Part shown: piece after piece, positions 12,222 through 37,987 of the stretch
Layout: the number at the start of each line of letters is the position of its first letter
How positions within the stretch are numbered: the stretch's first letter is position 1
Virus record (IMG/VR): IMGVR_UViG_3300028676_000003
Span: 1-64,000 of that record
Strand: one strand, 5' to 3'
DNA: 64,000 bases
Notes under the pieces: model-generated
What the model was told of the DNA's origin: nothing
The model's database searches: none
What the model saw: only the letters and a program-made list of their open reading frames with translations
Program-made: the position numbers and the translations under genes

Positions 12222-12608
12222 ATGGAAAAATTAAATTTCGACGGTGCGTTTCAAGCGCATCAAGGTGACGTACAACTTCACTCTTTAGCACAGTTACCAT
12301 CAAACGTAACAAAAGTGACTAAAACATTTTTCGCTAAATCAGAAAAATCAGGACATGCTCACGCATTGTGTGGTGACTATGAGTTATACGAAAATGAATC
12401 AGGTACACAGTTCGTTGTAGTTGGTAGTGATGGTGCAACATTGAACCACACAGGGTATCAAAACCTTACTCCTGAGTATTGGAACACTAACGCAGTGCTT
12501 CCTGTGGCTGACCACAAGCCTACAATCCTTAAAGCAGGTATCTACCACGTTGGAATCCAACGTAGAATCGACCCGTTCAAAAGCGTTTGGGAGAAAGTTC
12601 TTGACTAA
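12222..12608 (+). CDS. conserved partner of DUF6745 (QGDV / GHxH protein)
   Basis: HQGDV...SEKSGHAHAL...HKPTILKAGIYHVGIQRRIDPF. Confidence 0.65.
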   Translation: MEKLNFDGAFQAHQGDVQLHSLAQLPSNVTKVTKTFFAKSEKSGHAHALCGDYELYENESGTQFVVVGSDGATLNHTGYQNLTPEYWNTNAVLPVADHKPTILKAGIYHVGIQRRIDPFKSVWEKVLD

Positions 12609-12615
12609 ATCAAAC

Positions 12616-12642
12616 AAAACCCTACTTCGGTAGGGTTTTTTT
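12616..12642 (+). terminator. intrinsic terminator
   Basis: AAAACCCTAC-TTCG-GTAGGGTTTT followed by a T run. Confidence 0.85.
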
Positions 12643-12655
12643 ATTAAAAGACAAT

Positions 12656-13917
12656 ATGAAATTAGGTAAAAAGAAATCTCAAAAGATTATTGACAAGCTT
12701 GATGATAAAATATATTCCAAAATTGACAATAAGATTTTCAAAAAGGTCAAAGGAAAACAATTCGGCATGGTTCAAGATAAACTGAATAGCGTTTATGAAT
12801 TGGGTTGGAATGCTGACATAGAAACAATTCAAGAATGAAATTAGGTAACGAAACACATAGTACTTTAAAACCTGAAATTAGCTATATGTGGGGCTTTATC
12901 AGGGAAGTTAAAGATTTAAAAATTGATATCAATTTAACAATAAGATTATTTGGTGATTTTGATGGAAATATTATAACTTTTCCAAAATCATTTTCCGAAG
13001 TATAAGTAAATTAATTTAGATAATGAATTTAGGAAGAAGAATAGATGAAACACTAGCACATGTTCTTGGACGTGTTATATTCACGGCAGTTGACGATAAG
13101 ATTTTCAACGCACTAGAAATAGATGATTACGAAAAAGCCAATGAGAATTTCCATAAGCTTGATTTATTTGATGATGTGGCTGACAGCTTAAATATTTTAT
13201 GGGAATGAAACTAGGTAATACAAAAAGTGAGAAAACTAAAGATGATATTTTTAAACTTTGGCTTATATGTAGAGATAGTCGTAACGAAGTAATAACTAAT
13301 AGTTTATCAAACCATGTACTTGTTTTAATAAATCATAATATATCACGTAAATTATTCAAACTAAATGAAATTAGGAATTAGTAAAAAGCTAGATACTTGG
13401 GGAGAAGGAGCTAGAATCGAAAATAAGATGAATAACTTAATAATCAAGTCTGTAAGTCAAACAATGCTTGCAAGGGTTGTTCATGGTGTAAAAGAGAAAA
13501 TTGAAGATAATCTATTTGATTTATTGGAAGTATGATACTAGGAGAACACATAAGAAATAATGTAGCAGAACTTGTTGAGAAGATAAGAGACGGTGTAAGA
13601 GCTGAATCAAATCGAAGAACCAATGTAAGTACTAAATTAAAGGTGTCAGGAATAATAGGTAATACAAACGAAGCAGTTTTACAATTTGAATTTCAATACA
13701 GATATACATTATGAAATTAGGTAAACCAATTGATAACTTATTTATGAATGGAAAGCTTGAGGGTCTTCAAACCCGACTATACAACAAGCTTAAGAAAGAA
13801 GTAGGAAAGAAGCTATATTTAGATATTGAAGGAACTATTTTTGATAACATATATGGTGAAAGTGTAGAAATTTACAATGAAGTTGAAGATTATTTCATGT
13901 ATTATTTGGTAGTTTAA
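12656..13917 (+). repeat. MKLG microprotein array, block A (7 coupled micro-ORFs)
   Basis: Starts at 12656, 12835, 13023, 13205, 13365, 13532, 13711; all ATG-NNN-YTA-GG. Confidence 0.9.
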
Positions 13918-13967
13918 AATATTATACATACCTTTGTAGAAGAAAATTAATAACTAAATTAAAATCT

Positions 13968-14534
13968 ATGGAATTTTTCAGTTTAAAGTATGTTGGTCTA
14001 ACAGACTATTCTCCAAAAGGTATCATTCAATGGGCCATCTTCAACAGTAAATGGTTACTATTACCGTTCTTGATGAAGTTGATATGTTCATTGGTTATGC
14101 TTGGATGGGAATACTGTTTCCACTCTGATGTATCAGCAGAAGAAGTAATGCACATCTTGCACGGTGTCGATATCGTAATGATTGCTTATTTGGTTCGCAT
14201 GATTGTAATTGGGTTATATAACTCGGCAATCGACAAATCACATAAGGAACTTGGTGAGAAGATATCATCAGGATTGCTTAAGATTAAATTATCAACATCT
14301 ATCATGGGTGTCTCATCAATCCACTTGTTACAATCTTTCATGCAGTTGCACGAAATGACTGATAAGAATTGGTTTATCATCAGTGTAAGGATTGGACTTC
14401 AAGTACTTATTCACTTGGTATTCATTTATGGTTCACATATCTTAGCTAAGATGGAGTATCTACATGACCTTGGTGAGTCTATTCACAAGGAAGAACATGA
14501 CGAACACGAACAAACAGAAACACACGACCACTAA
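13968..14534 (+). CDS. YqhA/UPF0114-family membrane protein
   Basis: LKIKLSTSIMGVSSIHLLQSFM and VDIVMIAYLVRMIVIG resemble the YqhA pattern; own promoter at 13929-13936. Confidence 0.7.
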   Translation: MEFFSLKYVGLTDYSPKGIIQWAIFNSKWLLLPFLMKLICSLVMLGWEYCFHSDVSAEEVMHILHGVDIVMIAYLVRMIVIGLYNSAIDKSHKELGEKISSGLLKIKLSTSIMGVSSIHLLQSFMQLHEMTDKNWFIISVRIGLQVLIHLVFIYGSHILAKMEYLHDLGESIHKEEHDEHEQTETHDH

Positions 14535-14722
14535 TGGCAAAAACAAAAACACCTACAGAACACTTGGTAGTAATCGTTCATAAGAAGGGCGAAGTACCAC
14601 CAAAGTTATATGACTGTCCTATTGGTGAAAGGACGAAAGAAGACGCAATATTGCAATCACAAAAAATTTATGAAAAAACTTATGGTACGAAAGATTATCA
14701 GTGGCATTACTTTGCTCATTAG
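14534..14722 (+). CDS. hypothetical protein
   Basis: 62 aa, TAATG coupled. Confidence 0.6.
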   Translation: MAKTKTPTEHLVVIVHKKGEVPPKLYDCPIGERTKEDAILQSQKIYEKTYGTKDYQWHYFAH

Positions 14723-15140
14723 TATTTTATTACTAACTGTATCGTGTAATCAACACATCAAAAAAAGTGTCTTTAAGACAAAAGACGGTAAAGGGTATGT
14801 CTACCAAGACACTGACGACCTATTATGGTATTACATCGTTTACAACCAATCAAATGGTATGTATGAAGTAAGCCCTGTAAACGGAACGCCCGACTTCGAT
14901 GCAAGTTCAAGCGTAAGCCTTGACTTATCATCAGCAAACACAAGCGACTTCGCAAGTGTATCAGAAAGCATGTCAGAAACTACAGGTGAATCAGGAGAGG
15001 CAAGTGCTGACAATGATGCCAGTGGTGAAGGAATGTCAGAATCAACTGGTGAATCAGGTGACGGTGGCGGTGAATCGACTGGTACTAGTGATGCAGGGTC
15101 CGATGGTGGTGGCTCTGATGGTGGCGGTGGTGGAGAATAA
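14670..15140 (+). CDS. putative lipoprotein with Gly/Ser/acidic disordered tail
   Basis: Signal ending LLTVSC; tail SESTGESGDGGGES...GGGGE. Confidence 0.7.
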   Translation: MKKLMVRKIISGITLLISILLLTVSCNQHIKKSVFKTKDGKGYVYQDTDDLLWYYIVYNQSNGMYEVSPVNGTPDFDASSSVSLDLSSANTSDFASVSESMSETTGESGEASADNDASGEGMSESTGESGDGGGESTGTSDAGSDGGGSDGGGGGE

Positions 15141-15164
15141 CCACACCTAGATAAAAGATATATA

Positions 15165-15211
15165 AAATCCCAATGAACATTTGTTTTATTGGGATTTTTT
15201 TTGTACCTTTG
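15165..15211 (+). promoter_or_regulatory. terminator hairpin overlapping the promoter for array block B
   Basis: AAAATCCCAAT/ATTGGGATTTT inverted repeat; TACCTTTG 15204-15211. Confidence 0.75.
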
Positions 15212-15215
15212 TTTT

Positions 15216-18200
15216 ATGGAATTAGGTAAACGTATAAATCGACACATACCAAGTGACTTTACTGATACAGTAATGATTACTCTTGATGATATAATCATGC
15301 GGATAAGTGTTGCAGGTAAGTCTTCTATTGATGTAAGTGGTTTAAGACTTAGCCCATTTTTATTTACATTATTTAGAAACATATCATTATGAAATTAGGT
15401 GAAAATATAAACAAACATGTACCAAATTATTTTACAGATGTGGTTATTGTTACATTTGCTAATAATACAATAATTAGCTTAGGTGTTAGAGGGAAATGTA
15501 AAATTAGAGAATTAAACCTTGACAGTTATATGTTTAGAATGTTTAGGGGTAAATTATTATGAAATTAGGAAGCACCAAGAAAGAAACAATAATGTATTTT
15601 ATTGATTTAGTCAATAAAAATTCATTCAAGGTAGCCTATGCTAGACTTGATTGTAGTATTCCTATATTCAATCAGGTAAGCCAAGGTATTAACATTATAA
15701 GAACATCAAGAGACAATGAACTTAGGTAAATTTAAATCAGCACCAAACATAAGAATCGCTATGGATATGATTCAGCGAAACCTTCAAAACAAATACATTG
15801 TTAATACTGGTGGTTTTGTACATAAGTACATGCCTAATCGTATGGGAGAAGTTATGCAAGAACGTTACACCTTATTGATATCTGATGATTCTAGGTGAGC
15901 CAAGAAGAGACAAATTGGATAAAAGTATATCAAATGATATAAGTTTTCCAATTATACAGAAAGGTCGAGAGACCTTAGAGTATGAACTATGGTCTAAAAT
16001 CAAAAATGACCTTGGAATTAAGGTAATGGATTCAACACCAAGAGTAACAAAGATTTATAACAAAATAGATATATGAGAAAACTTATACAAATAGGTAAAC
16101 CACTTCAACGAAAGTTTAATAATACTATGACTAATAGATTGTTAACTAGACTTAGTAATCGTGTTGAAAAAGACCTTGCATTTCCGTTGATTGAAGATTT
16201 AGTTAATAGCTACAAAACAGAGGATATAAGCGATTTTATGTCTTTATATATTAAAGTAAAACACGTAAATGCAGATGGATTTATTGGATGGTCAGCAGGT
16301 AGAGGTGTCGATGTTGGGCATGTCTTTGACGAATAGAACACGTCCCTTAAAAATTCACATACAACAAACAATATCTCATAAATGTGTTGATATTATTGGT
16401 GTGAACACCTACAACGATGTTAATGTTATTTTAACAAATCGGGTTATCCGAGCGGTTAATTTCGAAATCCGTAAAATACGTAAACCATGAAACTAGGGAA
16501 TAAAACAGATGTAAATACCGTAACTAATGCTTTACATGAGCTTAAGTGGGATATTGTTTGGGATGCTGTTGCGAAAGAAACAGGACTTGATAATATGGGA
16601 ACAGTGAGTGAAGCGATTTGGGATAAGATAGACGATGAATTATTCTTTGATTTTTATTATATTGACTCAATAAATCCAACATATCCATGAAATTAGGTAA
16701 ACAAAGAAGTAATCCAATTCGTTCACTTATTCAGTCTCTTGCTTATACAAAGTTTTGGGATGAAAGTTTTAGTGCTACAAAACCTGAGTTATGGAATGAT
16801 ATAAGCAGAAAGACTTGGGATAGAGTAAACAATGAAATAATTCCAATATCAGTTAGGAGTGAAATTAGGTAAACCAATACAAGATATAGTCACTAAGGCG
16901 GTTAAAAATCTATGTTACTATAAGTTATGGAATGATACCACAGCTGTAACTGACCGTGATTTATGGGAAGACTTAGCTGTTAGGATGTGGGATAACGGAT
17001 TTAATATAGAGATAAGTGAAATTAGGTAATCCAATAGGACAATATAAACATGTAACAATGCTGAATAATTTAGCGTTGTCAATCAGATGTAATGATGAAG
17101 ACTATGATATAGCTGATATTGTATTATGGGAAGGTGTAAAACAAGCAATAGGAAATGGAGAAGTTAGTCTTAGGAGAATTTATAGGGGTTAACCTAACCA
17201 AGCTTATAAATAAAAATCAATTGGATATGGATAAAATACTCTATTTGAAGGTTAATAACCTTGATTTTGATAACGTATTCAATGACATTTATAATAGCGT
17301 AACAAGAAACATTCAATTCAGACACTTGATTGAGGAACATATCTTGTATGACAGAGAACAAAGAGATGCAGTTAATCAAATGTTACCTTTTTAATATGGA
17401 ACTAGGAGATACAATATACTACGAAATGCGAAATAAGATATCAGATAATATTTGGTTTGTACTTGCAGATGAGAACTTGAACATTCAAACCGAAATTGGT
17501 AATGAAATTAATGAAGAAATTTGGGAAAAACAAATCATTTTTCCTAGTAGAGGTGAAATGATTTAATATGAAATTAGGTGAAAGACAACTAACAAAAATA
17601 CTAATAATCAATGATGTTAACACAATAATTAATATTGATTTGCGTCGAATATATTATAACGAAAGAATTAATTTCACTGGTAGTACGCTTCTAGGGAATT
17701 TAAGAATTATTAATTTAACTTGGAGTATACGTGAACTTAGGTAAAAGTAAATCAGAGAATTTTGAAGATTTAAATAAAGAACATAAGAAAGACTTACATG
17801 AGAATATTAAGGTTTCTCTTGATAGAGTATGTCTTGATTATTGGGATGATTGGGATAGATGGGCGTCAGGACCCGTAACACAATTAATAAAGGGAATTAG
17901 ACCAAGAGTATATGAATTTAGGAAAACAAATAGACAGCGTTGATTATCGAAATAATGTTCTTATATCGATAAACAATATGGAACAACAAATAAATGCTCC
18001 TAAGTATGATTATGTTCATGGATGGGGGCCTTGGGCTGACCTTGATTGGTTTGTTGATATATTTCATTCAGATTTTAGAGTATGGATTTAGGTATTTCAC
18101 AAGCAAATAAACTATCAGATATTGATAATGAAGGGAGATTTACATTCAGCGAATCAAGTAGATTCAGAATAAAGCTTAGACAAGAGTATTGTGATAAAAG

Positions 18201-18966
18201 GTATAGTGAAGGAGTTTTTATTACAGCAAATTTTAATTTTGTTGACTTAAATATACAAATAAATGAAATTAGGTAATCATACAAGAGAAACATTCTATAC
18301 AGTCCATCATATTTGGGCTAAGTTGCTTGAACGCAATAAGAATGAACGTATAGCTCTAACGCTTTGGAGAAACGTTAATAATTCAACTAATGATAATATA
18401 AGTCTTCAATTGGCTCCATATAAAATAAAACGAGTATGATACTAGGTAATAAGGTTGAATACAAGCCATATAGCGGAATTGGTTGTTATACTAGGGTTTA
18501 TATAAATGGTTTTATGCATAGTCTTATACATAGAATTGTATCAATTAAAGTAACCAGTAGACTAACATTAGGACTACAAAGGATTAGTAACAATAGAATC
18601 ATAATCAATGAAATTAGGTAGACACTTATACGATGTAACGGCAAGTGAAGGTGCTGGAAACATGCAGACTTTCTTCATGATGTATACCTATGGTAAGCTA
18701 GAAACTAAATTGGCTAATTGGATGTATGCTAGAATGATACGAGGTTATGGTAATACGTTACCAATAAATTATAAAGTACTATGGACATGGGGAAATTGGG
18801 ATTAGGAGAGCCGAGGTCGGTAAGTTTAGAACATGACGTAAGGAAACTATCAAACCATATGTTTGACTTGGTATATGATGTTAAACTAGAACACAGACCG
18901 TTCGTAAATACTAACGCTAAGATTAGACGAAATCTAATTGATGTGAGAAATTTACAAGTAAAGTAA
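15216..18966 (+). repeat. MKLG microprotein array, block B (about 21 micro-ORFs)
   Basis: Starts at 15216, 15389, 15559, 15716, 15885, 16073, about 16320, 16487, 16687, 16859, 17016, 17155, 17396, 17568, 17731, 17912, 18082, 18263, 18436, 18608, 18796. Confidence 0.9.
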
Positions 18967-19032
18967 AACTTTTTATCAAATAATTTGGTATATTGAATTA
19001 TTATACATACCTTTGTTAAAAATAAATCAGAT

Positions 19033-19239
19033 ATGAGAGCATTAGTTTGGATTCTTTTATTCATTATACAAGTTATTACTGGCGCAATGACCATTTGTAC
19101 TTGGATTCTTTGGGTAACAAGCTTCCCAACAAAAACAGATATGTTTTATCCTTGTTTTGCATCATTTATTATCTGTAGCTTAGCGTTTATTATTAATCAA
19201 TTCCTGCAACATACGTGGGATAATTACAAAGACAATTAA
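19033..19239 (+). CDS. small membrane protein
   Basis: Two TM helices; promoter box 19008-19015. Confidence 0.7.
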   Translation: MRALVWILLFIIQVITGAMTICTWILWVTSFPTKTDMFYPCFASFIICSLAFIINQFLQHTWDNYKDN

Positions 19240-19242
19240 ATT

Positions 19243-19659
19243 ATGAAAGATTTACAAAGTTTCATTACGGATATGGTTCGTATTGAAGAAATTGAGTCAG
19301 TTCAAGCATTTGGACACTACCCATTTCAATTAATGTCAGAGGGGTCTGATGATTCGTTAACTCTTGCCGTGCTTGACTTAGGTGATGTAATACCTTGCTA
19401 CAAGATATTTGCTGAACACTTAGCGAAGGGTGCCAAAAGAATCTATATGTCTATTGACTTTCCTGCGGGTGGTGACTTAGCAGAAGACTTCGTTGCTGTA
19501 TTCCAATACGAAAACGAAACCTTTAATGTTGTAGCGTTGCCATATGATGCTGAGGGAACACAATCTCCACAAGTAACAACTGAACAAAGCGTTCACTTAA
19601 GTGAACTCAAAACTCAGTTTGAAACGATTGTTAAAACTTTCATTAAGCAAGAGGCTTAA
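19243..19659 (+). CDS. hypothetical protein
   Basis: 138-aa ORF. Confidence 0.75.
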   Translation: MKDLQSFITDMVRIEEIESVQAFGHYPFQLMSEGSDDSLTLAVLDLGDVIPCYKIFAEHLAKGAKRIYMSIDFPAGGDLAEDFVAVFQYENETFNVVALPYDAEGTQSPQVTTEQSVHLSELKTQFETIVKTFIKQEA

Positions 19660-19680
19660 TATCAATCAAAAGAAAAGTTA

Positions 19681-19714
19681 AGGGATAATCTGATTAGTTG
19701 GATTATCCCTTTAT
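19681..19714 (+). terminator. probable terminator hairpin
   Basis: AGGGATAATC/GATTATCCCT followed by TTATT. Confidence 0.65.
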
Positions 19715-19733
19715 TATATTTAACCAATTAGCT

Positions 19734-22700
19734 ATGCTACTAGGAAAACCATTAGAATCAGAAATCCATAATAATCTATATGATTTATATACCAGTCATG
19801 GACGTATTGCTCATAATCGAAAATGGGAACGAAAACTATTATTACGTTTCTTTGAACTTGAAATGGTTTGGTGTGAAAGAGTTGGAATGACAGATGTTCA
19901 ATTCAAGCGAATAATGAAGAAGATTAACAAACGAAAACGCAAGGAAAATGCTATTAGGAAACAAAATAAGGATTAGAGACCAAGGCGGTAGAGCTATTTG
20001 GTGTGAAGTTGAAGATGAAATAAAAAGAAATGCAACTGAATATATCAATACTATTGTTAATCGCTTATTATGGACAAGGGTAATGGATGAAGTAGGTGAA
20101 ATATCAAGATACAAGATAAAAATATGAAATTAGGACAACCATTTGACTATGAAATAGCTGAGAGCTTAAACCATTTGTACGAAAATAGTGTTCATTTTCT
20201 ACAGAACCGTCTTTTTGATACCGAGACATATTTGCTATTAGATAACATCAATGTATTTGGTGCTTTGATGGTTAGTAGCGTATATATTCCAAGTCTTGAT
20301 GATGATGATTTTTAGATTAACTTGTATTTCTCGTTTATTAATCGTATCTTTGTATCATGAAAGTAGGTAGGTGTTATAAGGAGCAACTAAACCATGAGAT
20401 GAATCATGTTCGGTTTAGAATCGAAAATGTGATTGAGAAATCTAATGATTTAGAGAATGAATCTTTATTACGTCTATTTGGATTTAATTTCAGATTAAAT
20501 AATTTAGGAATATGAATTTAGGAATAAAGGTAAGTCCAAGGTGTCCAAGGCTATATGATAATCTACTTGATGATGTAAATATAGTTTGTGTGTTAAGGCC
20601 ACAAATACCGATTTATCGAATGAAAGACAGGATAGTTAGAGGAATTTTTAATTTATTTATGATAGATGAAATTAGGTAATCAACCGAAAAAGAAACTTGA
20701 ATATGAAACAGTTTATTATGAAATTATAAATGGTATCAGTGATGAACCGTTTTATATAAGAAATAATAACCTTATATACAATCTTTCAGCAGAAATTGGA
20801 GAAGAATTAATAGTCTTTAAAGTATTAAAAGTATGAAGCTTATACCAATAAACAGAGGTAGTGTTGCGACACCAATCTCAACAGAACGAACCAATATGTG
20901 GTATAGTATTGTAAAAATAAAGAATTGGGAATTAGAGGAAGTAAGAAACACTATAAAGGATAATGTAATTGAAACCGTATTCGGGTTAACCCAATTCAAC
21001 AATAAAATGAAGATATGAAATTAGTTCCAATAGCATTTAGATATAAAATCATGCAACTGAACGCTACGCTTTGTGAACATGTAATGGATAATGAGAGAAG
21101 ACAGAAAAAAGTTCATGAATATTGGTCAGTTTGGAAGTTGAGGGTCCGACAAGATGTATTTGCAAATCAATTTACTAATATGGTCAAATGGAAGTAGGAA
21201 AACAGATAACAAGCGAAGCTCTTGAACTCTATAAGGTAATTATCATTACTAAGAAAGAGGTTGAAGAAGTTGTTCTGTTCACTGGTAATAGAAATATGGA
21301 CCCGATAATATCACTAAGATGGACACTAACAGCACTGGCGCAACAATTTGAATTAGATATATGAAATTAGGAAGACAATTAACGAAGGAAGATTTAGTAC
21401 CATGGAGTATTTATCACGAGTTAAGTAGGGATGCTAATACCAAAGCTCATATGCATGCAATGAATGAAGGGTTTAGAGACCTAGATAATTTAAGGGAGTC
21501 AATAGTAATTATGTTAGTAACTTACGGTAGATTTAATTCATTATGGAACTAGGAAAAGAAATACAAAATAAATTTACCTGTTGGGAAGTTTATGAAAAGG
21601 TACGCAGAGAAACTGAAAAGAATTCAAATGAATTTCAATCATTAAAAAAATTAAAACTAAAACTAAGTAGTTATAATCTAATTGTATGGATTTAGGAAAG
21701 ACAACCAACTATAATAAGCAAAGGTTTAATACAGTAATGCTAAGGCTTAAGCTTATTAATCGGAGCGGATGTATTTCAGCTAATGAAGTTTATAATATGA
21801 GATATAGATTTGAAGGTTTATTATTAACACCAAGAATAAATAAATTAATATGAAATTAACAAAGCCCGATAGAAACATTCATTTAACCTTATTTGTTTTA
21901 GGTATGAAAATAAAAGCTTATACGCAAAGAGCACATATCTTTGATATGATTGAAGTAACAGAACAAACAATTATTTTTGATGAAACACCAAGTATGTTAT
22001 GAAACTAGGAGAAAAACCATATTTCAATCTTCAACAATATATTCAATCTAAATGTGCTGAAACACTCTTTTATGAAGTTGAAATTGAATCGAAAATAGAA
22101 ATCCTATTCAGATTTTTAGTTTTGGATATAACATGTAAAAACTTATGAAACTAGGAAATAAAACAAGCAAAAGGAATATTGCAAACTTCAAGGAAGAACA
22201 CACAAGAAAGATGTTCAATACGAACGAAGCCTATGCAGTATGGCATATGTTTAATCGTATTAATAGGAAGATGATTAATACTCATGATATAACAATACCA
22301 TGGAATTAGGAATACCTGTAAGGATTAATTTTTATGATGAAAAAAATCCAATCCGTAAGTTAAAGAACGATATTTGGAGTTTTGTAGCTCCATTTGTTAT
22401 GTTACGTGACGCTCATGAACCATTTAATATTAGACCAAGTGTCGTAAATGGAATAATTAACCAAGATTTAGAAAATAGTTTTGATGAATTATGAAGCTAG
22501 GACAAAACATAAAAAAGAAAAATTCTCCAAGGAGACTGGTTGATATTACTGTAGCCCAGTTGAATATTGATTTACATATTCACCTTACAATAATTGGATT
22601 AGAATATAGAGTAATCATGGAATTAGGTAAATATACTAACATATGCGTTTAGGAGCAAGAACAGGAGCAACACTAGGTACGCTCATCGATATTGAAACAC

Positions 22701-25700: not shown

Positions 25701-28700
25701 AAGAAATGAGATGGAATAATTTTCGGACAAGTTTCGTTGAACAAAGACTTAAGTTATGATTCTAGGAAAGCTACAAAGAAAAAATATTGGTATGCCAATG
25801 AGATGTGTTCATAATGAAGTTAGAACCATGTTGATACATTCAGATAAAGATGGACGAACAGAAGTCTTACAAACAACCGATAAAATTCTATCATTAACGA
25901 GAAGAAATATTGAGATATGAAACTGGGAAACACACAAAAAGTTCACTTAGGAACTGAACTTAAATATGTTAATTGGAACGTTAGAAGCAAGGTTGAAGAT
26001 AAAGCAACGAGAAGCGCAACACTACCAATAATGCGAATTTTTGTCAGAATAACATTCAGTTCAATAAGAGAAATATGAAACTAGGCGATATAAAAAAAAA
26101 TGATATAAAGGTTGTTGTTTCTGATTGGCATAAAGAATCAGTATTTGATTTTCCTTTTAAATTTGGACTAAGTAATTATTACATCTTTTCAAGATTTAGA
26201 AGAACAGTAACAGTAGGACAAAATTTTAGTTTATGATATTAGGTAAGAAAATAGATAACGGCAAGTTCATTCAGAATGAAATTAAAACATTTCGTACAAG
26301 ACAAAATTATATGAAAGATTTAGAAATAAATCGTTATGTTTATGACCAAAGTCTTAGTGTATTTAATACAGTTAGAATTAATCTTAGCTTCATTTATCAT
26401 CTAGCATATAAATTTTACTTATGGATATAGGAGAATACACAGGTAAGCTGATAACAAAGACGATATCTAAGATAATTGAAGGAACTGGTAAAAACATTCA
26501 TTCAAAAAGAAATGTTCCACGTGGAACATTTCATCAACCATTAGAACCAATTGATATATGGTTCAGCATAACAACCCAAATGAATAGATTATGAACATAG
26601 GTAAAACAGTAGAATCACAAGTAAGAAGCGAATTAGCAACGGCAAAGCTATATGAGCAGTGTTTTCATCACGAATTACATAGCAGAATGTCAAAAGAAGT
26701 ACATAAGCTAATTGATGCTAGTATTTGGGATAGCCTAATTGAGAAGGTAACTGTTATCGCTAAGTGTGAAGAGTTGGAACGATGGAATTACGAAGCAATG
26801 AGTCAATGGAATTATGAAAATAGGTAAAGAAGTGGTTAATACAATACAAACTAGACTAGGACCTATATATGGAAATTGTTTTATTTATAATAAGATTCCT
26901 ATGAGTAGAAGGATTCATGAACAAGTAAGGAAACGAATATGGAACAACTTAGATTCAACAGTAGTTCAAATTACTATTCTTAATTTAGAAAAATTATGAA
27001 TTTAGGAAAAGAAATTGGTAGAGAACTTAACAGCAAATGTTATAGGGGACTGCATCAATTTACAAGTTATCATCATTTGGAACGCAAGGTATCTAAAGAG
27101 TTATGGTCGTATCTTGATGAACGGATTTGGGATAGAGTAATTGACATAGCACAATTGGCTTCGAATGGAGTTGATGATAGTAAAACACTGGAAGAAGAAT
27201 GAAAATAGGAAAAAGAGTAATACCGATTGGTCCAAAAGACACATACAATGAAATTACACGTGGTATGATGCTTGAAATTAAAGGAAAGGTTAAGTATAAT
27301 CCAATTATGGATGTTGTAGATAATACTTGGACAAGGATATTTATTCGTCTAATAAATTTTCAAAATATGTTATGAAATTAGGAAAATCACTAAATTACGA
27401 AACTGGTGTTTACCAAAGCGGTATTCAATCAATAACTGATAACTATACTAGGAAAGGACAAACAGAAGACATACGAATTGAGTTGATACGTCCGTTAAGA
27501 CGTATGAAACAACGAGTGAAAGCCACGTTAAATGACATGACAAGGATAGATAGCTTGAGGTTCTTTACAATTATTGATTTCGACGATGCAGAATTAGACC
27601 AAACTGAAAGTATAATATGAAACTAGGACATGCACCAATTAGATGAATATAGGAAATAAGTTAGATAATACTATCTTACATAAGCAACAAATATTGCTTA
27701 AACAAGAAATGGGTCAACAAATAAGGTTTAATGGTAATGTATTAACAAATTATGACGTGGTTGATTTGTTCATAATAATAAGACATGCAGTAACAAATCA
27801 AATACGTGGATATAGGAAAAACAACAAGTGATGAAATATATTTTAATATAAGTGATTTTCATCTTAAGATACTCACACAGGAAAATCACAATATGTTCAC
27901 AAGAACTAGAAGAGAAGAAATGCTTTTGATTGTATTTCAAATACCACGAAACCTGAGAGTAAGTCTGAAATTAAAAGTAGGAAAAAGATGATATTAGGAA
28001 ATAGCACAAGAGATAACGTAAGCATGTGTTCAAGCAACATCAATCATAATCTATTGACTACCATACAAGGTACAATAAGAAGAGGTGTAAGACAGCGCAA
28101 AGAAGAATTAGCTCTAATTGTCTTCATGTATGAAAGAATAAATTCATTGAGGAAATTATGAAATTAGGAAAATCAATTCAAGGAGTATCAGGTAAAATAA
28201 ATAGTGATTTATTCAATAATTGTTATAAACACAGGTTTAATGACCTGACTTCAATGAAGTTATATGAATTAGTTTATGTAGCGATTTGGCAGAAGACTAG
28301 TCGAAGATTATATATTAATATGTCAATTATTAATATATTAATACCAATATAATTCACGATATGAAATTAGGACAAGAACAATCAAGAGCATTACATAAAC
28401 AAAGAACCCTCATGCTTCTTAGAATGATGAAAGAGAAGAACGAGAAAACAAAAAACATTAAAGTAGTAGCACAAATATTCAACAGAATAAGACTACAAAG
28501 AATAAGCTTATGAAATTAGGAAATAACATAGACCCAAAAGGAATATTTAATAAGATATTTCCAACTGGAATAAGCATTGTATCAATAGTTGTTTCAGCAA
28601 ACAGACTAATAAAAATGAATGTTCATTCAAGCAAAGAAGCCTATCAGGCAAGTAGGGGAATGGATATCGGAAACATTCTTTCAGTAGAAGTTGATATTGA

Positions 28701-31700
28701 CCATAATACAATTATTCACAATTACTCACAACCAACAGAATTATGAAAATAGGAGAACACACATCAATGAAATTATCTTTCGGCTTTGTACAAGACTTAT
28801 GGTTCGCATTGACTAGTGAACAAAATAAGACACTTAAGGACGCTGAGTATGTAACTAAGCCTGAAATACGCATAGGAATACCACAAATTGAATATGCTAT
28901 TTATGACGGGTGTAATTCATGTGCAGGATGAAACTAGGAAAATCGATAGGCGGGTTAATGGAAACTAAGGTTGCATTAAACACACTAGGAATGGCTTACC
29001 AATTAACAGAGGAAAGATATATCGGTTCAATTGATACTCGGTTTATGACCCTGAGATTTACCAAACCAAATACGGTAGTATGGTGGGAGCTTCAAGAAGA
29101 TAGAGATTTGGACCAAATGATTAAAAATATTAACGATGAAAATAGGTAATAAAACAGATAAAACACTAATAACTAGTGAAATGGAGAAAACGATTGTTAA
29201 TCATGTATGTTTACAAGTAAGAAGAATTGACTATCGTAACTTCAAAGAAATTAATTTAGTTTCTGATAATATTAGTCGATTATGTGGTTATATCAGCCAA
29301 AAGGTAATAACCTTAGATACATTAAGAAGATGGAGTTAGGAAAGAAATTACATAGACATACTGATACCGTGGCTTATTTCGTTGAAGGAATGGTTAATGC
29401 TGACTTTCATAGAGATAACACTAAGATTGCTTATCAATTCCTTAGAGAAGTCAGAACGAGACTTGATAACCAACTTGAACAATTCAAGATAAGAAACATT
29501 ATACACAGAAAACCATTACCACGTAGAAAACCATAATTATATGAAATTAGGACCAACACAGAAACACCACATAATGTCACCGCTTAACGATATACCTTTA
29601 GGTTGTCATATCACATTTATCAATGAGAAGATGGTGTTGTATGATACAGCAGAAACCATACGAATTTATTTGGATGATTTCATGGTTAAGATTGATTTCA
29701 CAGATATAGGAATTGACTCATTAGAACTTTATAGAATATGAACATAGGAGAATCAAAAAACAGAGAAGTATTCAATGCGCTGGCAGAAGTTCCGACAAGT
29801 TGGCAGTTCTATAACAAACAAGGAAATCTTTATATTGTAAATGATGATACAACCATACAGATTCATATAAGAAACTTTACGATTAGATATCCCGAAGAAA
29901 TCTTAAGTCTATATGAACCACCAAATGAAGAACCCTAATGGAATTAGGAAAAGACATTAAAAGACAGCCAAGCATCTATTCGATAGAAGAAACAATATTC
30001 AACTATACTGAAATTAGGGTCCTCAGAGAACCAATCACTAGAATGAGACTCAGACTAATAAGACAAATGCCACGAACAGGAAGCAGATTTAAATTATGAA
30101 AATAGGAAAAAACATAGAACCAAAACCAACAGCAACGATTCTTAACAGAAGTCTAGCTGATAAGATGTGGAAGACCGTAACAACCAGTGTTCATTTTAAT
30201 GCACGTCAAGGAATGAATAGACCAATGCGAATGATAAGAGACCTAATGGGGATAACATTTGATTTATGATACTAGGAGAGAACAAAAGAAGCATGTGGAA
30301 CAATACAAAGGTACTTGAAAATTCAAGTGTATTTAGAAGCCAAATGATAGGACAAATCAACGAGACATATTCCAAGGAATATAAAGCTCATATATGGGAT
30401 ATAGGGTTTAAAAGGATGCCTGAATTATTAAGAAATAAATTATTTATACGTGATACTAGGTAAATCAATGCTCAAAGATTTCTATTACATTGAAACAGGG
30501 ATGATAAGAACCGAAATGATGAAAGTTATTATTAAAAGTAGGATATTGGTTAAGATTAATAAAACATTTCCCAATGCAAACAGAAATAATATATGGAATC
30601 AATTCATAAGTATGCAAACTCTAAAAATAACAAATATACGATGATACTAGGAAAATCACAGAAGATACCACAACCCAAACGCAGATTTACCAATGATAAT
30701 CCAATATTGACTAATCTAACAGCACAATGGGATGAGATAGAGAAAACACCAAATAATCTTAACGAATACTATAAGTATAGAGACACACAAGACTATTTGT
30801 TGATATTCAGTATTCTAGGCATCTATAAACGAAAATTAAGATTTTATAGATGAAATTAGGAAAACCACAAGGCTTTGATTTAGTAGGAAAAACATCAGCG
30901 TTTAGAGCTATAACACAATGGGAGATTTACGGAAATACAACAGGCGATATGACATTCCTTATATGGAATATGTCAGAGAACATAAATCTAATTAGAGTAA
31001 AAAGAATAAATCAACCATTATGAAAATAGGTAATTCACTATCTAAAAAATATACCAAGCTTGTAGAAAATATTGTACAACACACATATAATGAATATAGA
31101 AAAAATACTGAAAAATATCTTAAATCTATAAACAGAGAGAATACAAGACCAATAGGAACTGCTAAACCTCAGAATATATGAAACTAGGCTACCCAATAAA
31201 GAAATATAAGCTTCTTAAGCTCGTTGAATCAGGGTTTACGTCTCCTGATATGAATGTGGGCTATATGAACCAAGTTTGGAATATGAATAGTGATGTGTAT
31301 ATAAGCAGAATACTAATGATTAAACCTTTAATACTAAGACATTGGAAATAGGAAAACACATACCAAATCATCTGCCTGAGAACAAGTATCTGCATAAGAT
31401 AGCACAACTCAGAATGTTCTTCTTTAAGTCGATTCGAGTTGAATATTATCTATATAACCATGTAGTAAATAGAATGTGGATTAAAGTAACTCAATTAGTA
31501 GAACCAATAACAAATAACGAAATATGAACCTAGGAAAACCAAAACACCAATGGGAAGAAAGATTTGATATGTATCTTTTAAGAAGCGAAATATCAGCAAG
31601 GGTTTCTCTTAGCTTTAAGACTCCTGAAAGACACGATATATGGAATAAATTAGTGATAACAAGACTTATAATAGGAAATATACAAAAGATATGAAATTAG

Positions 31701-33884
31701 GAAAAACAAAAAAAACCGTATTACATAAAGAGAATATAACAATGTGGAAAGGTTTCTTTCTTGAAATTGACAATCTAACAACAGGAAGAGTAAGATATCA
31801 TCCAATTGGGATGGATAGAAAGATAAATAGACAAACTCAGCTAAATTTAAAATTGAAGTGATGAAATTAGGAAAATCAGTAATAAAATTATATAGAGGAA
31901 TATCACAATTCTCTAATCTTAGTCCTATAACAGTAAGTTGGAACCTCAACCTAGCAGTAGGAAGAAAGATACATGACCCTGACGTAGCTATGCCGATTAA
32001 AAGCTATTTAATGTTGGAGTTTATGGAACTAATAATAACCACCGAATTTAACCACATATGAACCTAGGAGAACAAATACAATACTTACCTGATAATAAGT
32101 ATCTTAAAAGAGATGCTAATCTAAGGTTTGTCTTATTTAAAACACAACCAAAAGTAGACCTTGATATTAAAATATATGTAGGTAAACTAACTTGGGCCAG
32201 CGTTGAAAGACACCTTAGAACAATTAAACCCAATATATATGAATCTAGTATATGAAACTAATACATATCAATACAACCAAATATAGACATGACCAACTTA
32301 TGGATATGTCAGAAATGAGATACTATATGAAAGAACAAATAGATGATAACGATATTGATAACCATGATGTAAAAACTCCTATACGAAATATCGCAAGAAA
32401 TCTAATAGAAATCAATAGACGAAAACTTAAAACACCCAAGGTATGATACTTAAGCCAATCCTAATGAAAAGAAATAAGACAAACCAAATAGCTGATGTTG
32501 AAGATATGAGATATCTAATGATGAGATATATTAATGAAGCAAACCTCGTTGATAGTAAAAACCTTATATGGCAAATCAGAACAAACCTATTAGAAATCAA
32601 TAGAAGAATACCAAGAAACATATGATACTAGGAAAACAAGTAAAAACAAAAATAGGTGAAATGGCAATACCGAATGGTGTTCCTTTAGCAATGTATAGCA
32701 ATGATAGTCCAATTTTTATGGTGTATGATAGAATAAGAAGACTACTAGGACATAAAAGTAGAACCAATATAATATTATGAAACTAGGAAAACGAATAAAC
32801 CCAGACGTAAGAGCAGAAACAAGAGATATCATTATACATACTATTCACTACTTTGAACACAATATAGTTAAAAAGTCTGATTTTTATAAGATACAAGATA
32901 TGTACGGAAATATCCTAAGAGACCTTAAGCCATATGTAACCGCCCATAACGACATTTTAAAGGAAAAAACGGACCACAGAGAATATATAATACAAAGATA
33001 AACAAAATGAACATAGGAAACCATATAACCAAATACAAATACTCATTTGAACAATCTAACGATAAAACATATATAAGGCTTCCTATGTGTAAGTATATAG
33101 ATAAAGGATATGCATATCATACACAACAAATCATAAGGCAAATGACAGATAAAATGATTAGCATACTTATGAATAAAATAAGACAAATATGACTCTAGGA
33201 AAAGAAGTTGAAGACATAAGATATAAAATCTTAAGAAGACAAGACCTATACGGAATGAGAAGCGAAATGCTTAATATCATCCATAATGAGAACCATTCTA
33301 CCGTGATAAATCTTATATGGGAAATGCCTACACGGATGCCAAGGACCCTCACACAACAAATACCTCGGATATGAAGCTCGGAAGGAATATAAGAAAAACA
33401 AGGAATATTGCCGTTGAAATTATACGAAATGAATCATGTAAGCAACTACTCGACAAATGCGCCCCTAAAGCCTATAATTACCACACGAACTATACCAATA
33501 ACAAAAGAAAACCACTTCAACTACAAACAGAACTATTATGAACATAGGAAACCATATAATACAAAAAAGAATAATACATCATGAAAAAACAAATATGATT
33601 AAAATAATGATACACGTAATCATAGAGAAATATACCATACAAACAAGAGACCTCGTATGGGAAAATACCATTGTTGACCCAATAATCCTAATGAGAAAAA
33701 TACAAGAAATATGAAACTAGGAAAACACTTAAGAAAGGAAACACATATATTCTGCGGTTCCGATAAACTTAGCGAAAAGATAGTAGACGACCTTATTCAG
33801 AGTCATGTCTATAAAGAACTATGCCAAGTAAGAAGAGACTTGAATTTCGAACTCATCCCACCTAAGTATCATCTAATATATTAA
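19734..33884 (+). repeat. MKLG microprotein array, block C (about 82 units, mean period about 170 bp)
   Basis: Starts at 19734, 19948, 20124, 20357, 20512, 20666, 20833, 21015, 21188, 21361, 21543, 21686, 21850, 21999, 22145, 22300, 22491, 22617, 22643, 22833, 22984, 23144, 23287, 23445, 23612, 23782, 23925, 24113, 24267, 24458, 24633, 24812, 24972, 25157, 25318, 25464, 25607, 25756, 25917, 26075, 26233, 26421, 26591, 26814, 26996, 27199, 27372, 27617, 27643, 27806, 27988, 28158, 28361, 28510, 28743, 28928, 29136, 29330, 29541, 29738, 29938, 30096, 30266, 30450, 30641, 30850, 31020, 31178, 31342, 31524, 31691, 31861, 32058, 32252, 32443, 32622, 32777, 33007, 33189, 33371, 33538, 33711. Confidence 0.9.
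26513..26528. promoter_or_regulatory. parS: parS-like centromere palindrome
   Basis: TGTTCCACGTGGAACA (inside a perfect 20-bp palindrome at 26511-26530) matches the bacterial parS consensus. Confidence 0.7.
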
Positions 33885-35653: not shown

Positions 35654-35659
35654 ATCTAT

Positions 35660-36521: not shown

Positions 36522-36527
36522 ATCTAT

Positions 36528-37981: not shown

Positions 37982-37987
37982 ATCTAT

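Follow-up and report, generated by a model that had tools for sequence, protein, structure and literature searches.

A tandem array of about 108 overlapping microprotein genes in a large phage genome and its probable kinship with the variable arm of DUF6745 proteins

Introduction

The small internal proteins encoded at the ipI locus of T-even phages have little in common beyond a short conserved N-terminus, and the locus differs strongly from one related phage to another. The conserved segment is a capsid-targeting tag, and tags of the T4 type end at a prohead-protease site (L/I-x-E). Tandem gene families are also found in large DNA viruses, where the MGF families of African swine fever virus and the amplification of poxvirus K3L are examples of 'genomic accordions'. 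These families can occupy several per cent of a genome and are thought to be driven by conflict with the host.

Here we describe an array of microprotein genes that resembles both systems in part. The array lies in a window of 64,000 nucleotides (positions 1 to 64,000 of IMG/VR record IMGVR_UViG_3300028676_000003) from a 368-kb phage genome. Like the ipI proteins, its products share a conserved N-terminus on variable bodies. Whereas the ipI locus comprises a few genes whose tag ends at the protease site, the window carries about 108 genes that have no such site, and their N-terminus derives from an internal segment of another protein. As with the accordions, a tandem family takes up several per cent of the genome (about 6%). 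If expressed, this would be among the largest single-family phage gene arrays known to us. We could not find a family library, solved structure or paper that describes the array or the split-arm arrangement proposed below, and literature searches on DUF6745, tandem small-protein arrays in phages, the conserved N-terminus and literal repeat strings returned nothing relevant. Thus, the view of the original prediction that no named system reaches this size agrees with what we found.

Results

An open-frame census of positions 12656-33884 identifies about 108 tiled + strand ORFs that encode 48-84 aa, with a typical product of about 57 residues, and whose starts are spaced by a median of 173 bp. 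The original prediction, made from the DNA letters and their open frames, had described about 110 units of 45-85 aa with a period of about 170 bp covering about 19 kb; indeed, units account for about 19 kb of the 21.2-kb span. It had also proposed a fixed M-x-(L/I/V)-G start. Specifically, 94 units begin with ATG-NNN-NTN-GGN, nearly all of which encode M-x-L/I/V-G, and six more carry a motif of this type with a GTG or TTG start codon. The motif has decayed in about eight units, yielding starts such as MKLIP, MKLVP, MKLTKP and MILKP. Counts of the start motif are 101 on the + strand within the region, 13 in the remaining 43 kb and four on the entire - strand.

The predicted overlap of stop codons with the next start is seen at about 70% of junctions, where the upstream stop falls within the first 14 nt of the following unit. 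These overlaps are of 4 nt (ATGA; 46 junctions), 10 nt (TAG in NTAGG; 11 junctions) or 14 nt (GGTAA; 8 junctions). The tiling of units is therefore as described, but the run is not uninterrupted, since ordinary genes break it twice (13968-15140 and 19033-19659) to leave three blocks of 7, 21 and about 80 units (Table 1).

Table 1. Features of the array and its immediate neighbourhood (positions in the window; L150 and L151 are loci of related phages)
Feature	Coordinates	Strand	Basis or remark
Arm-less DUF6745 gene, 336 aa, directly 5' of array	11167..12177	+	Weak Pfam PF20530 match
Partner gene, 128 aa, conserved pair with DUF6745	12222..12608	+	79-80% identity in L150 and L151
Hairpin + T-run, terminator-like	12616..12639	+	16 nt 5' of first unit; L151 counterpart after partner gene
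Array block 1, 7 units	12656..13917	+	Open-frame census; block 1 of L150 and L151 likewise 7
Insert 1, UPF0114 (YqhA-like) membrane protein, non-unit	13968..14534	+	Pfam PF03350, E 2.6e-10
Insert 1 continued, overlapping 62-aa and 176-aa genes	14534..15140	+	L151 identities 41% and 61%
Hairpin + T-run	15164..15198	+	17 nt 5' of block 2
Array block 2, 21 units (3 GTG starts, 3 decayed motifs)	15216..18966	+	Open-frame census
Insert 2, 68-aa hydrophobic protein and 138-aa protein, non-units	19033..19659	+	138-aa gene 52% identical in L151
Hairpin + T-run	19680..19711	+	22 nt 5' of block 3
Array block 3, about 80 units, 14 kb	19734..33884	+	Open-frame census, hairpin scan, composition

The UPF0114 gene (whose TIGR00645 score is below the cut-off) has a counterpart in the matching position of L151 with 63% identity, and the 138-aa gene of the second insert is 52% identical at the equivalent position. 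In the 176-aa product of the first insert, the N-terminal segment is hydrophobic, whereas the tail is acidic and rich in Gly and Ser. A hairpin sequence similar to that preceding block 2 lies immediately 5' of block 2 in L151 (15743-15775), where it is scored on the - strand only. The interior of block 3 contains a single weak + strand terminator-like site (22375-22392), and coding-strand AT skew climbs to 0.32 near the array end. The small genes around the array share one strand, and very few of them have an informative family match. PADLOC gave zero matches for the neighbouring genes, NCBIfam gave just the below-cut-off TIGR00645 match, and a relaxed Pfam scan of six neighbouring genes gave sub-threshold matches only.

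The array is real, and its units carry the signatures of translated genes. The + strand of 12656-33884 contains 109 ATG-initiated ORFs of at least 48 aa, whereas 200 shuffles yielded 4.4 on average and never more than 10, and the - strand has 11. ORFs cover 98% of the span, and the proposal that selection for coding holds these frames open is supported. Codon usage in the units is close to that of the other genes in the window. Each unit start is located in an A-rich, unstructured mRNA stretch, with predicted folding energies of -1.1 to -1.5 kcal/mol at unit starts versus -3.3 to -3.7 kcal/mol in unit bodies. No Shine-Dalgarno sequence was found at unit starts; instead, an A-run is present at -14 to -10 upstream of the genes in the window. 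The wobble base of codon 3 is A in 94 of 101 cases, versus about 50-58% in unit bodies, and its first base varies between T, C and A to specify Leu or Ile, with synonymous alternation of TTA and CTA. Part of the N-terminal conservation is maintained at the nucleotide level, through the overlap of stops and starts and the A-rich initiation regions.

Several other accounts of this arrangement were considered and rejected. An assembly artefact was rejected because the units are non-identical and the independent assemblies of relatives show matching architecture. An alternative genetic code or a polyprotein is not compatible with the use of all three stop codons and the rotation of frames by -1 or +1. 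The array also does not resemble an integron cassette array, since most units overlap, leaving no intergenic space for attC-type inverted repeats, and only one short palindrome occurs in 6.3 kb of array.

The N-terminal consensus of the units is MKLGKsIkkkL, with conservation extending to approximately residue 11. When the first five residues are removed, 80 of the 94 units have no blastp match to any other unit, and the few similar pairs are mostly neighbours. The original prediction saw no similarity between distant units beyond residue 4-5, which holds for most bodies in pairwise comparison but overlooks both the longer N-terminus and a shared rhythm. Hydrophobic residues recur in the bodies every 3.9-4.0 residues (power about 2.0, z about 10, versus 1.36 and z = 3 for control proteins), and a period of about 4 is likewise present in the units of the related loci L150, L151 and L162. 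Literal repeats survive in only a few window units, such as unit 1 (12656-12838), which retains period-4 K-I/K-V repeats and scores 17.3 bits against a profile of (x-S-V-x)n units.

An AF2 model of a unit from block 1 consists of one helix (residues 3-59, pLDDT 70) with no predicted tertiary fold. The units are predicted to be basic proteins of about 57 residues that each form one long amphipathic alpha-helix, with a median net charge of +4 and a range of -9 to +10. No hydrophobic signal was found at their N-termini, and ten units scanned against Pfam and PHROGs had no significant match. A word-indexed protein search with a repeat-form unit (see below) also gave no match, probably owing to low complexity.

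A search for homologous arrays in related phages had been proposed, and such arrays were found at loci such as L150 and L151. Genes flanking the array are 40-88% identical between the window and these relatives, yet blastp detects a partner there for no more than 5 of 111 and 9 of 111 array ORFs, at 22-39% identity with one outlier at 67%. The idea of a conserved N-terminus on fast-diverging bodies is supported. In contrast, the number of units is nearly constant, with 7/7/7 units in block 1 and 21/22 in block 2, where weak collinear orthologues (30-34% identity) can be traced between the window and the 22 units of L151. The description of the array as an 'expandable' library is doubtful for this lineage, given these near-equal block sizes. 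Recent amplification of the accordion type was also rejected, as 80 of 94 units lack a detectable paralogue and block sizes are kept despite saturated synonymous divergence. The proposed dN/dS analysis was run on orthologous units. Among the window, L150 and L151, dN in detectable pairs is 0.3-1.3 and dS is saturated (about 1-2), which makes the ratio uninformative for most units and makes diversifying selection and relaxed constraint inseparable in the window.

Other related phages keep their units as literal repeats. In these arrays the whole protein is the repeat, which is always in frame with its start and stop. Positions 1-5 of the 12-nt repeat unit are variable (entropy of about 0.5-1.8 bits), whereas positions 6-12 are near-fixed (0-0.56 bits) and include three synonymous sites; the variation lies in the two x codons. 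The residues S, R, W, C, N, Y, D and G are common at these variable positions. Constraint at the nucleotide level could also explain why the synonymous sites barely change. A diversity-generating retroelement would combine a reverse transcriptase with a template/variable repeat pair that differs by adenine-specific changes. At the arm-bearing locus L152, where AAGGATTCGGTC is the commonest 12-nt unit, the bases that vary are those at which this unit has A. The conserved TCAGTA of the 12-nt unit in L015 contains A. No reverse transcriptase is present among the called genes around L152, L176 and L177. Divergence in the window lineage has left the units almost unrecognisable, and what is kept is the start, the length, the open frame, the four-residue rhythm and the number of units.

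The gene directly upstream of the array encodes a protein with 167 database homologues, and most of the 120 listed carry a precomputed PF20530 (DUF6745) assignment. Its AF2 model has a pLDDT of 87. A fold search with this model gave no PDB match, and the confident viral matches were only another DUF6745 protein and an uncharacterised fragment. A profile search against PDB sequences gave only a non-significant match to the DnaI N-domain (E 0.14), and no function is described for DUF6745 in the literature searched. The 128-aa partner gene that follows is 30% identical (E 4e-18) to the gene after an arm-bearing DUF6745 in L152, and a similar-looking gene of about 120 aa, as judged by eye, follows DUF6745 in L153 and L177. 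The partner has no family match in NCBIfam/PADLOC or relaxed Pfam scans.

Peptide patterns from the anchor protein recovered nothing in IMG/VR beyond the source record, and neither the flanking DNA nor the window DUF6745 protein (tblastn) matches any of 50,697 GenBank phages. An arm-bearing DUF6745 protein used as the tblastn query against the same phages recovers only distant genes of Microcystis phages and one Mycobacterium prophage gene, all without an array.

In many phages, DUF6745 proteins contain an arm between the N-terminal helices and the conserved core, where it emerges between a helix that ends near residue 75 and a conserved G-W-S-N-F-G-W segment. The arm starts with a lead-in, K-L-N/G-K-S-I-K-D-K-L/V, that is visible in proteins P0057, P0064 and P0020. 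Tetrapeptide repeats of the form x-S-V-x or x-A-Q-V follow, and their number ranges from 3 to more than 50. The repeats are visible in the sequences of arm-bearing homologues, whose lengths differ in 4-aa steps. Alignment of a repeat-form unit with P0057 begins exactly at the lead-in (57% identity, E 2e-11). A unit profile searched against 1.84 billion proteins yields 1260 matches (E up to 0.001), and three of ten matches checked, including the two best, are DUF6745 proteins. Most of the listed matches fall at approximately residues 70-260 of proteins of 370-590 aa. When applied to the window units, a profile of repeat-form units scores a mean of 3.9 bits, versus 2.0-2.4 bits for body-shuffled controls. 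The similarity of any individual window unit to an arm is weak, and their probable kinship rests on the shared N-terminal consensus, periodicity and synteny.

The genomic distribution of arms and arrays is complementary. An arm-less DUF6745 gene lies directly upstream in 8/8 array loci that have upstream sequence (the window, L150, L151, L015/L166, L027 and L160/L161/L172), and an array is absent at 4/4 arm-bearing loci (L152, L153, L176 and L177). L175 has an arm-less DUF6745 gene without an array, so arm loss does not require an array. On the evidence of sequence and synteny, the units are free-standing, fast-diverging copies of the DUF6745 variable arm. Their N-terminus is the arm lead-in, which itself reads as three degenerate repeat units in register. 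MKLG thus marks the base of a detached helical arm, because the N-terminus and periodicity match the DUF6745 lead-in and repeats and because synteny and the complementarity of arm and array agree.

Discussion

In the window phage and its relatives, DUF6745 lacks the arm, and this segment, with a start codon of its own, is multiplied downstream of the core gene. Each block would be transcribed as one polycistronic mRNA, and termination-reinitiation would then produce all units in roughly equal amounts. The microproteins might act in trans, as separately made arms of the DUF6745 core. The conserved turns at their N-termini would bind the core at the point from which a fused arm projects, and the variable remainder would present many binding surfaces, probably against variable host targets. 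We consider the combination of detached arms, coupled expression and action in trans with the core to be the best explanation overall, with a probability of roughly 0.45.

A more ambitious form of this proposal is tentative, and we regard it as somewhat unlikely in its entirety. It holds that the locus is a split combinatorial recognition system, in which one conserved DUF6745 core would use over 100 helical arms that are interchangeable, have a gene each and are produced jointly through coupled translation. The phage would thereby carry a germline repertoire of binding specificities to meet variable host targets. In related phages, a single arm would achieve the same in cis through slippage-driven variation in its length and sequence.

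If the units descend from DUF6745 arms, must they still act with the core? Each microprotein could instead inhibit a host protein of its own, or serve as its decoy, independently of the core and in the service of anti-defence or host takeover. Adjacency to DUF6745 would then be due to common ancestry alone, and folding and efficient translation would be what preserves the N-terminus. Extreme divergence with preservation of the ORFs would suit such an arsenal, as would the setting among small genes on one strand that mostly lack family matches and the one arm-less DUF6745 locus without an array. The residues enriched at variable positions of the repeat-form arrays are also typical of binding surfaces. 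However, a lone 57-residue helix without a predicted tertiary fold is an unlikely independent inhibitor, no known family is matched, and a functional link is suggested by the fused form in other phages and by an adjacency to DUF6745 that is strict across three divergent lineages. We therefore judge independent effectors to be unlikely. It is quite unlikely, in our estimation, that the units serve in bulk as near-equivalent amphipathic basic helices, for instance as a coat on nucleic acid, on membrane or on a phage structure, with copies raising the dose while sequences drift under constraint on rhythm, charge and length only. This would explain why only the N-terminus, the period-4 hydrophobicity, length and positive charge are conserved, would benefit from the equal output of coupled translation, and fits the weak constraint suggested by dN of 0.3-1.3 with saturated dS. 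Yet amplification normally leaves similar copies in variable number, whereas these copies are unrecognisably different and their block sizes stable. Moreover, net charge spans -9 to +10, and drift does not predict that replacement sites in the repeat-form arrays vary far more than silent sites.

Other readings place less weight on the function of the proteins or assign it elsewhere. Unequal recombination at the start motif might have produced filler DNA in a headful-packaged genome, in which open ORFs have no purpose beyond keeping ribosomes on the move and preventing polarity. Unequal exchange could use the conserved 11-15 nt of the start motif as microhomology, neighbouring units are sometimes similar, and composition shifts towards A along the array. 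We hold such neutral or selfish expansion to be very unlikely, as about 108 frames of uniform length remain open in three genomes at saturated synonymous divergence, and the amino-acid periodicity and residue-level N-terminal conservation with TTA/CTA alternation show selection on the protein. The original prediction favoured capsid targeting, with MKLG-type N-termini directing the products to the virion and the bodies acting as injected effectors, and a common N-terminus on variable bodies at a hypervariable locus does recall ipI. This model now has even less to recommend it. Residues 5-20 contain an [LI]xE motif in 13.8% of units versus 16.8% (sd 3.6%) in shuffles, with no E-rich column, and a scan of proteins from the 64-kb window found no head, scaffold or protease genes. 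The N-terminus has its homologue in an internal DUF6745 segment rather than in a terminal signal, and in related phages the whole protein is the repeat. The least probable reading is that the start motif, or the 12-bp repeats of relatives, are protein-binding sites of an iteron-like or centromere-like kind and that the ORFs are incidental. Binding sites within genes have a precedent in the lambda origin, which is part of gene O. The almost fixed synonymous sites of the 12-bp repeat, the bias for wobble A at codon 3 (94/101 versus about 50-58% in bodies) and the location of DUF6745 near recombination/replication genes in temperate-type contigs would be consistent with this role. Against it, motif variation follows codon structure (the first base of codon 3 varies to give Leu or Ile), open frames account for 98% of the 21 kb, every repeat shares its frame with a start and a stop, and window units without DNA repeats still keep the protein-level rhythm.

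Detached arms that act with the DUF6745 core thus remain our preferred explanation. The link to DUF6745 provides a testable hypothesis for a widespread uncharacterised family, in which a conserved core is combined with a hypervariable arm that is either fused or split. If expressed, the array would clearly illustrate how selection can maintain microproteins whose sequences are almost free to change. Such arrays are natural material for the study of phage binding diversity that arises without a reverse-transcriptase system, and they would show the reach of termination-reinitiation coupling in a system free of Shine-Dalgarno sequences.

Arrays of a second, unrelated microprotein family turned up in marine phages, and tandem microprotein arrays may therefore be general and overlooked in phages. 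Among at least 120 matches listed from a three-start DNA pattern scan of a genome collection, there were only chance hits and non-coding tandem repeats, with no arrays in cellular genomes.

As noted above, the array shares with genomic accordions a tandem family of considerable size. Accordions consist of near-identical copies in unstable number, whereas the window units have only 11 residues and a rhythm in common, occur in blocks of stable size and are microproteins with overlapping stops and starts. The precursors of cone-snail toxins, offered here as an analogy only, similarly pair a conserved N-terminal segment with a hypervariable remainder. Their leaders, however, are secretion signals that are cleaved off, whereas the units have no hydrophobic signal and their conserved part is predicted to lie within the same helix as the rest. 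The hyperplastic regions of T4-type phages are also runs of small early genes with short conserved boundary sequences that could mediate recombination. Those regions hold many unrelated families and intergenic promoter/stem-loop cassettes; the window array holds one family, has no intergenic space, and its conserved element is the coding start.

The DUF6745 proteins with a fused arm (PF20530; P0057, P0087, P0105 and P0020, from metagenomic phage or prophage-like contigs) have the lead-in and the x-S-V-x/x-A-Q-V repeats in common with the micro-ORFs, and their gene neighbourhood, including the partner of about 125 aa, in common with the array loci. In these proteins the segment is one insertion within 300-590 aa, with a length that changes in 4-aa steps. 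In the window, this segment is detached, has its own start codon, is present in about 108 copies and has diverged past literal repeats.

A tiled family of microprotein genes

Small open reading frames tile the + strand of the window across positions 12656-33884, where 109 ATG-initiated frames of at least 48 aa are found versus a mean of 4.4 and a maximum of 10 in 200 shuffles. The same count on the - strand gives 11. An open-frame census yields about 108 units that cover 98% of the span with a median start-to-start spacing of 173 bp, and thus the original prediction of about 110 tiled, overlapping + strand units is confirmed. In this census, 94 units begin with ATG-NNN-NTN-GGN, which encodes M-x-L/I/V-G in nearly all of them, six carry the same motif on GTG or TTG, and in about eight it has decayed. 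The motif occurs 101 times within the array region, 13 times in the remaining 43 kb of the + strand, and four times on the entire - strand of the window. Unit-unit junctions overlap by 4 nt (ATGA) at 46 sites, by 10 nt (TAG inside NTAGG) at 11, and by 14 nt (GGTAA) at eight, and the recurrent C-termini …NEIR, …WI and …WN are out-of-frame readings of the following unit's start motif.

Ordinary genes split the array twice, giving blocks that count 7, 21 and about 80 units. A strong hairpin with a T-run is located 16-22 nt ahead of the first unit of all three blocks, leaving too little room for a promoter after the hairpin. The blocks may be reached by terminator read-through, unless the hairpins serve another role. 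In L151, a relative of the window, a + strand hairpin follows the ~128-aa partner gene, and the sequence before block 2 is similar to the window hairpin, scored on the - strand only.

Features that flank and divide the array in the window
Feature	Positions
DUF6745 gene	11167-12177
~128-aa partner gene	12222-12608
Hairpin and T-run before block 1	12616-12639
Block separator 1: UPF0114 membrane protein and two small neighbours	13968-15140
Hairpin and T-run before block 2	15164-15198
Block separator 2: 68-aa hydrophobic protein and 138-aa protein	19033-19659
Hairpin and T-run before block 3	19680-19711

The window opens a 368,549-bp viral contig (IMG/VR; also a JGI metagenome contig), of which it makes up the first 64 kb. 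An array of the same kind occupies the same place in L150 and L151, two independent assemblies from other sequencing runs whose upstream DUF6745 proteins are 88% and 87% identical, respectively, to that of the window. Moreover, non-identical units give no opening for repeat collapse or expansion, and an assembly artefact can be set aside.

The ~108-gene family carries signatures of translated genes. Specifically, unit codon usage is like that of the window's larger genes (mean log-odds +0.23 versus +0.43). The window's genes have no Shine-Dalgarno sequence and are preceded by an A-run at -14 to -10. A TAAAA-type ribosome-binding context has been described for Flavobacterium, and its match to this A-run makes a Bacteroidota host plausible. 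Mean predicted mRNA folding energy is -1.1 to -1.5 kcal/mol at unit starts (-10 to +20) versus -3.3 to -3.7 in the bodies. The first seven codons are enriched in wobble A, which at codon 3 is found in 94 of 101 cases, compared with 50-58% for the same amino acids in bodies. This excess and the structure trough indicate that the fixed N-terminus is partly a nucleotide-level constraint, namely an unstructured initiation region that also bears stop codons for the incoming frame. Each block would then be one polycistronic message read by termination-reinitiation.

Several other features of composition and annotation were observed. Across 12000-34000, the AT skew of the + strand shows a steady climb, starting at 0.14 and reaching 0.32, and GC skew becomes negative at 32-34 kb. 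The residues I, N, R and M are more frequent in the units than in the window's other proteins. Near-identical sequences of 15-25 nt precede several unrelated genes (35645-35659, 36513-36527 and 37973-37987, as well as upstream of 38599/48321 and 41816/44365; for example, …tctaaataaatctat before ATG) and may be promoter or initiation cassettes that these genes have in common. Another M-N-L-G start is that of the gene at 37988. Rfam reports three tRNA genes at 48961-49638, where ARAGORN reports one tRNA only, of undetermined identity and with a two-base 'anticodon'.

Predicted helices that diverge in place

Once the first five residues are taken off, blastp finds no match among the other units for 80 of 94 units, and the few pairs that do resemble each other mostly lie side by side. 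The bodies are thus hypervariable as originally described, except that the N-terminal consensus reaches residue 11 (M-K-L-G-K-s-I-k-k-k-L) and the bodies keep a period-4 rhythm. Along the units, hydrophobicity peaks every 3.9-4.0 residues (z ~10 versus residue shuffles), in the first 28 residues and also in the rest. The same period is found in units of L150, L151 and L162, another array contig, whereas 57-residue fragments of other proteins from the window show it weakly. With a median net charge of +4, the units are basic, and they contain no hydrophobic segment. An AlphaFold2 model of unit 1, built on an alignment of 44 units, is a single continuous helix over residues 3-59 at moderate confidence (pLDDT 70, pTM 0.31), and the unit products are accordingly predicted to be single helices.

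Sequence change is very fast under a conserved architecture. In flanking genes, the window shares 40-88% identity with L150 or L151, yet a blastp partner of any kind exists for just 5 and 9, respectively, of the 111 array ORFs, at 22-39% identity save for one 67% outlier. Block 1 counts seven units in each of the three genomes, block 2 counts 21 in the window and 22 in L151, and the inserted ordinary genes are at the same places in the window and L151. Units therefore mostly diverge in place while each frame stays open. The dN/dS check advised at the outset compared 15 unit pairs, in which synonymous divergence is saturated (dS about 1-2). Values of dN are 0.3-1.3 over all pairs, and those of dN/dS are 0.2-1.5 where computable and 0.2-0.7 for pairs at least 26% identical; these figures describe detectable pairs and are uninformative on the undetectable majority. 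The outlier, unit 18608-18805, is 67% identical (dN/dS 0.17) to L150:8198-8413, which is located upstream of DUF6745, outside the array.

Related arrays of literal repeats

Pattern scans of IMG/VR and JGI metagenomes revealed further AT-rich viral contigs whose arrays share this start and these overlaps. In most, the whole protein is M-K/I-L-G-K-S-I-K-D-K-V followed by (x-S-V-x)n literal tetrapeptides and a short tail, such that length depends on repeat number. Other contigs carry x-N-Q-L or x-x-Q-V repeats instead (L168, L165), and L162 units fall between the two states, less regular than literal repeats and less diverged than the window units. The N-terminal motif itself keeps the phase of the repeat (M-K-L-G, K-S-I-K, D-K-V-x). 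Against a profile built from 40 repeat-form units, whole window units score a mean of 3.9 bits versus 2.0-2.4 in body-shuffled controls, and bodies alone 0.3 versus about -1.2 bits for shuffled controls.

Within the 12-nt repeat, nt 1-5 (the two x codons) are variable, with an entropy of about 0.5-1.8 bits, and nt 6-12, including three synonymous sites, are nearly fixed (0-0.56 bits). One x position is mostly S, R, W, C, N or Y, and the other D, N, G or S. Synonymous sites are near-invariant, with TCGGTC in 14/14 repeats and TCAGTA in 205/224 (L152:10001-11050, the arm of DUF6745 protein P0087; L015 and L161 arrays). Such a pattern is in keeping with young repeats whose x positions are under diversifying selection, and nucleotide-level constraint may alternatively account for nt 6-12. 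In L152, the variable bases coincide exactly with the A positions of the commonest unit, AAGGATTCGGTC, a pattern reminiscent of adenine-directed mutagenesis; no reverse transcriptase is found near this arm, and the pattern does not hold in L015.

Units derived from a DUF6745 arm

The gene directly upstream of the array encodes a DUF6745 protein, and a homologue holds this position in every array locus with upstream sequence (the window, L150, L151, L015/L166, L027 and L160/L161/L172). These loci span three divergent lineages, between which the DUF6745 proteins are 40-42% identical. Many other DUF6745 proteins differ in length by steps of four residues because an internal run of the same tetrapeptide repeats, the arm, varies. 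The arm lies between N-terminal helices and the conserved core, and its lead-in (K-L-N-K-S-I-K-D-K-L in proteins P0057 and P0064, K-I-G-K-A-I-D-A-Q-V in P0020) is, by sequence comparison, the stretch with which the micro-ORFs begin. In an alignment of a repeat-form unit with P0057, the match (residues 3-51 to 79-127; 57% identity, E 2e-11) sets in exactly at the lead-in. Searched against 1.84 billion proteins, a unit profile gave 1260 matches at E up to 0.001, most among those listed falling at about residues 70-260 of 370-590-aa proteins. Three of ten matches checked in Pfam, including the two best, are DUF6745 proteins.

Array-adjacent DUF6745 proteins lack the arm, and this arrangement is conserved. 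Conversely, four arm-bearing loci (L152, L153, L176 and L177) have no array. The complementarity is strong but not perfect, since an arm-less locus, L175, likewise lacks an array. A ~125-aa gene follows DUF6745 in both arm-bearing and array loci. We conclude that each microprotein is a copy of the DUF6745 arm, detached from its protein and multiplied. Parts that are fused in one genome and split in another usually work together, which makes joint action with the DUF6745 core probable.

The DUF6745 model is confident (pLDDT 87). A fold search with it gave no PDB match, and its only confident viral matches were the DUF6745 protein of Microcystis phage LMM01 and one uncharacterised fragment. L151 carries a second DUF6745 paralogue of 400 aa (L151:13927-15129) within insert 1 of its array; it shares 36% identity with the L027 type and is preceded by a 78-aa gene that by eye appears to recur beside the DUF6745 gene of L175. 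In L150, an HNH endonuclease gene (NUMOD4 and HNH_3 domains; L150:9565-9963) separates DUF6745 from the ~128-aa partner, an insertion absent in the window and L151.

Discussion

Our overall reading, to which we assign a probability of roughly 0.45, is that the units are detached arms, made by coupled translation and supplied in trans to the DUF6745 core. The conserved first turns of each unit would dock on this core, and the variable remainder would offer many binding surfaces. The structural and evolutionary part of this reading is very probable, and the partnership in trans is itself tentative.

Foremost among the rivals is an arsenal of independent effectors, which could draw on the same divergence of bodies; in view of the recurrent DUF6745 neighbour, we consider it unlikely. 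A bulk or dosage role for near-equivalent helices, in line with the shared hydrophobic rhythm but not with unlike copies in blocks of stable size, is decidedly unlikely. Neutral filler is improbable, given frames that stay open. The original prediction of a library of diversified microproteins stands, but its targeting tag is not supported, and the virion-targeting model is quite improbable. An array acting at the DNA level, for which the nucleotide constraints described here might be cited, is the least probable, given open frames over 98% of the span.

Microproteins encoded in tandem arrays may be more widespread among phages. Another family, unrelated and of ~55 aa, forms arrays of up to 19 units in marine viral contigs (IMG/VR, 36-46% GC; L010-L014, L016, L018, L019, L021, L023, L025 and L026), with the same 4-, 10- and 14-nt stop/start overlaps. 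Its members begin M-K/Q/R-V/I-G-D/S-L-V-K, share a core of G-I-V-V and W..G, and often end …L-E-V-L-C-K or …L-E-V-I-N-E-S-R; by eye they resemble small SH3/KOW-like barrels, with no significant match in Pfam. Furthermore, the - strand of L006, a 36-kb IMG/VR contig (39.6% GC), carries about 24 M-x-L-G units with Cys-rich bodies, a recurrent …E-I/M-x-x-x-L end and a periodicity peak of 3.6 rather than 4.0. This array is followed by a gene that is DnaB-like by eye, and no DUF6745 gene is present within the 6 kb examined.

Among known systems, the T-even internal-protein locus resembles the array just in joining one shared N-terminus to bodies that vary. The cleavage motif that defines that locus is not conserved in the array, and the N-terminus here is of different origin. 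Integron cassettes are ruled out because the array offers neither room nor inverted repeats for attC sites, as are genomic accordions, because the copies are unlike one another and copy number is stable. Neither the units nor such arrays are described in the family libraries, cultured phages or literature searched. Tandem multigene families in general are already known in large viruses.
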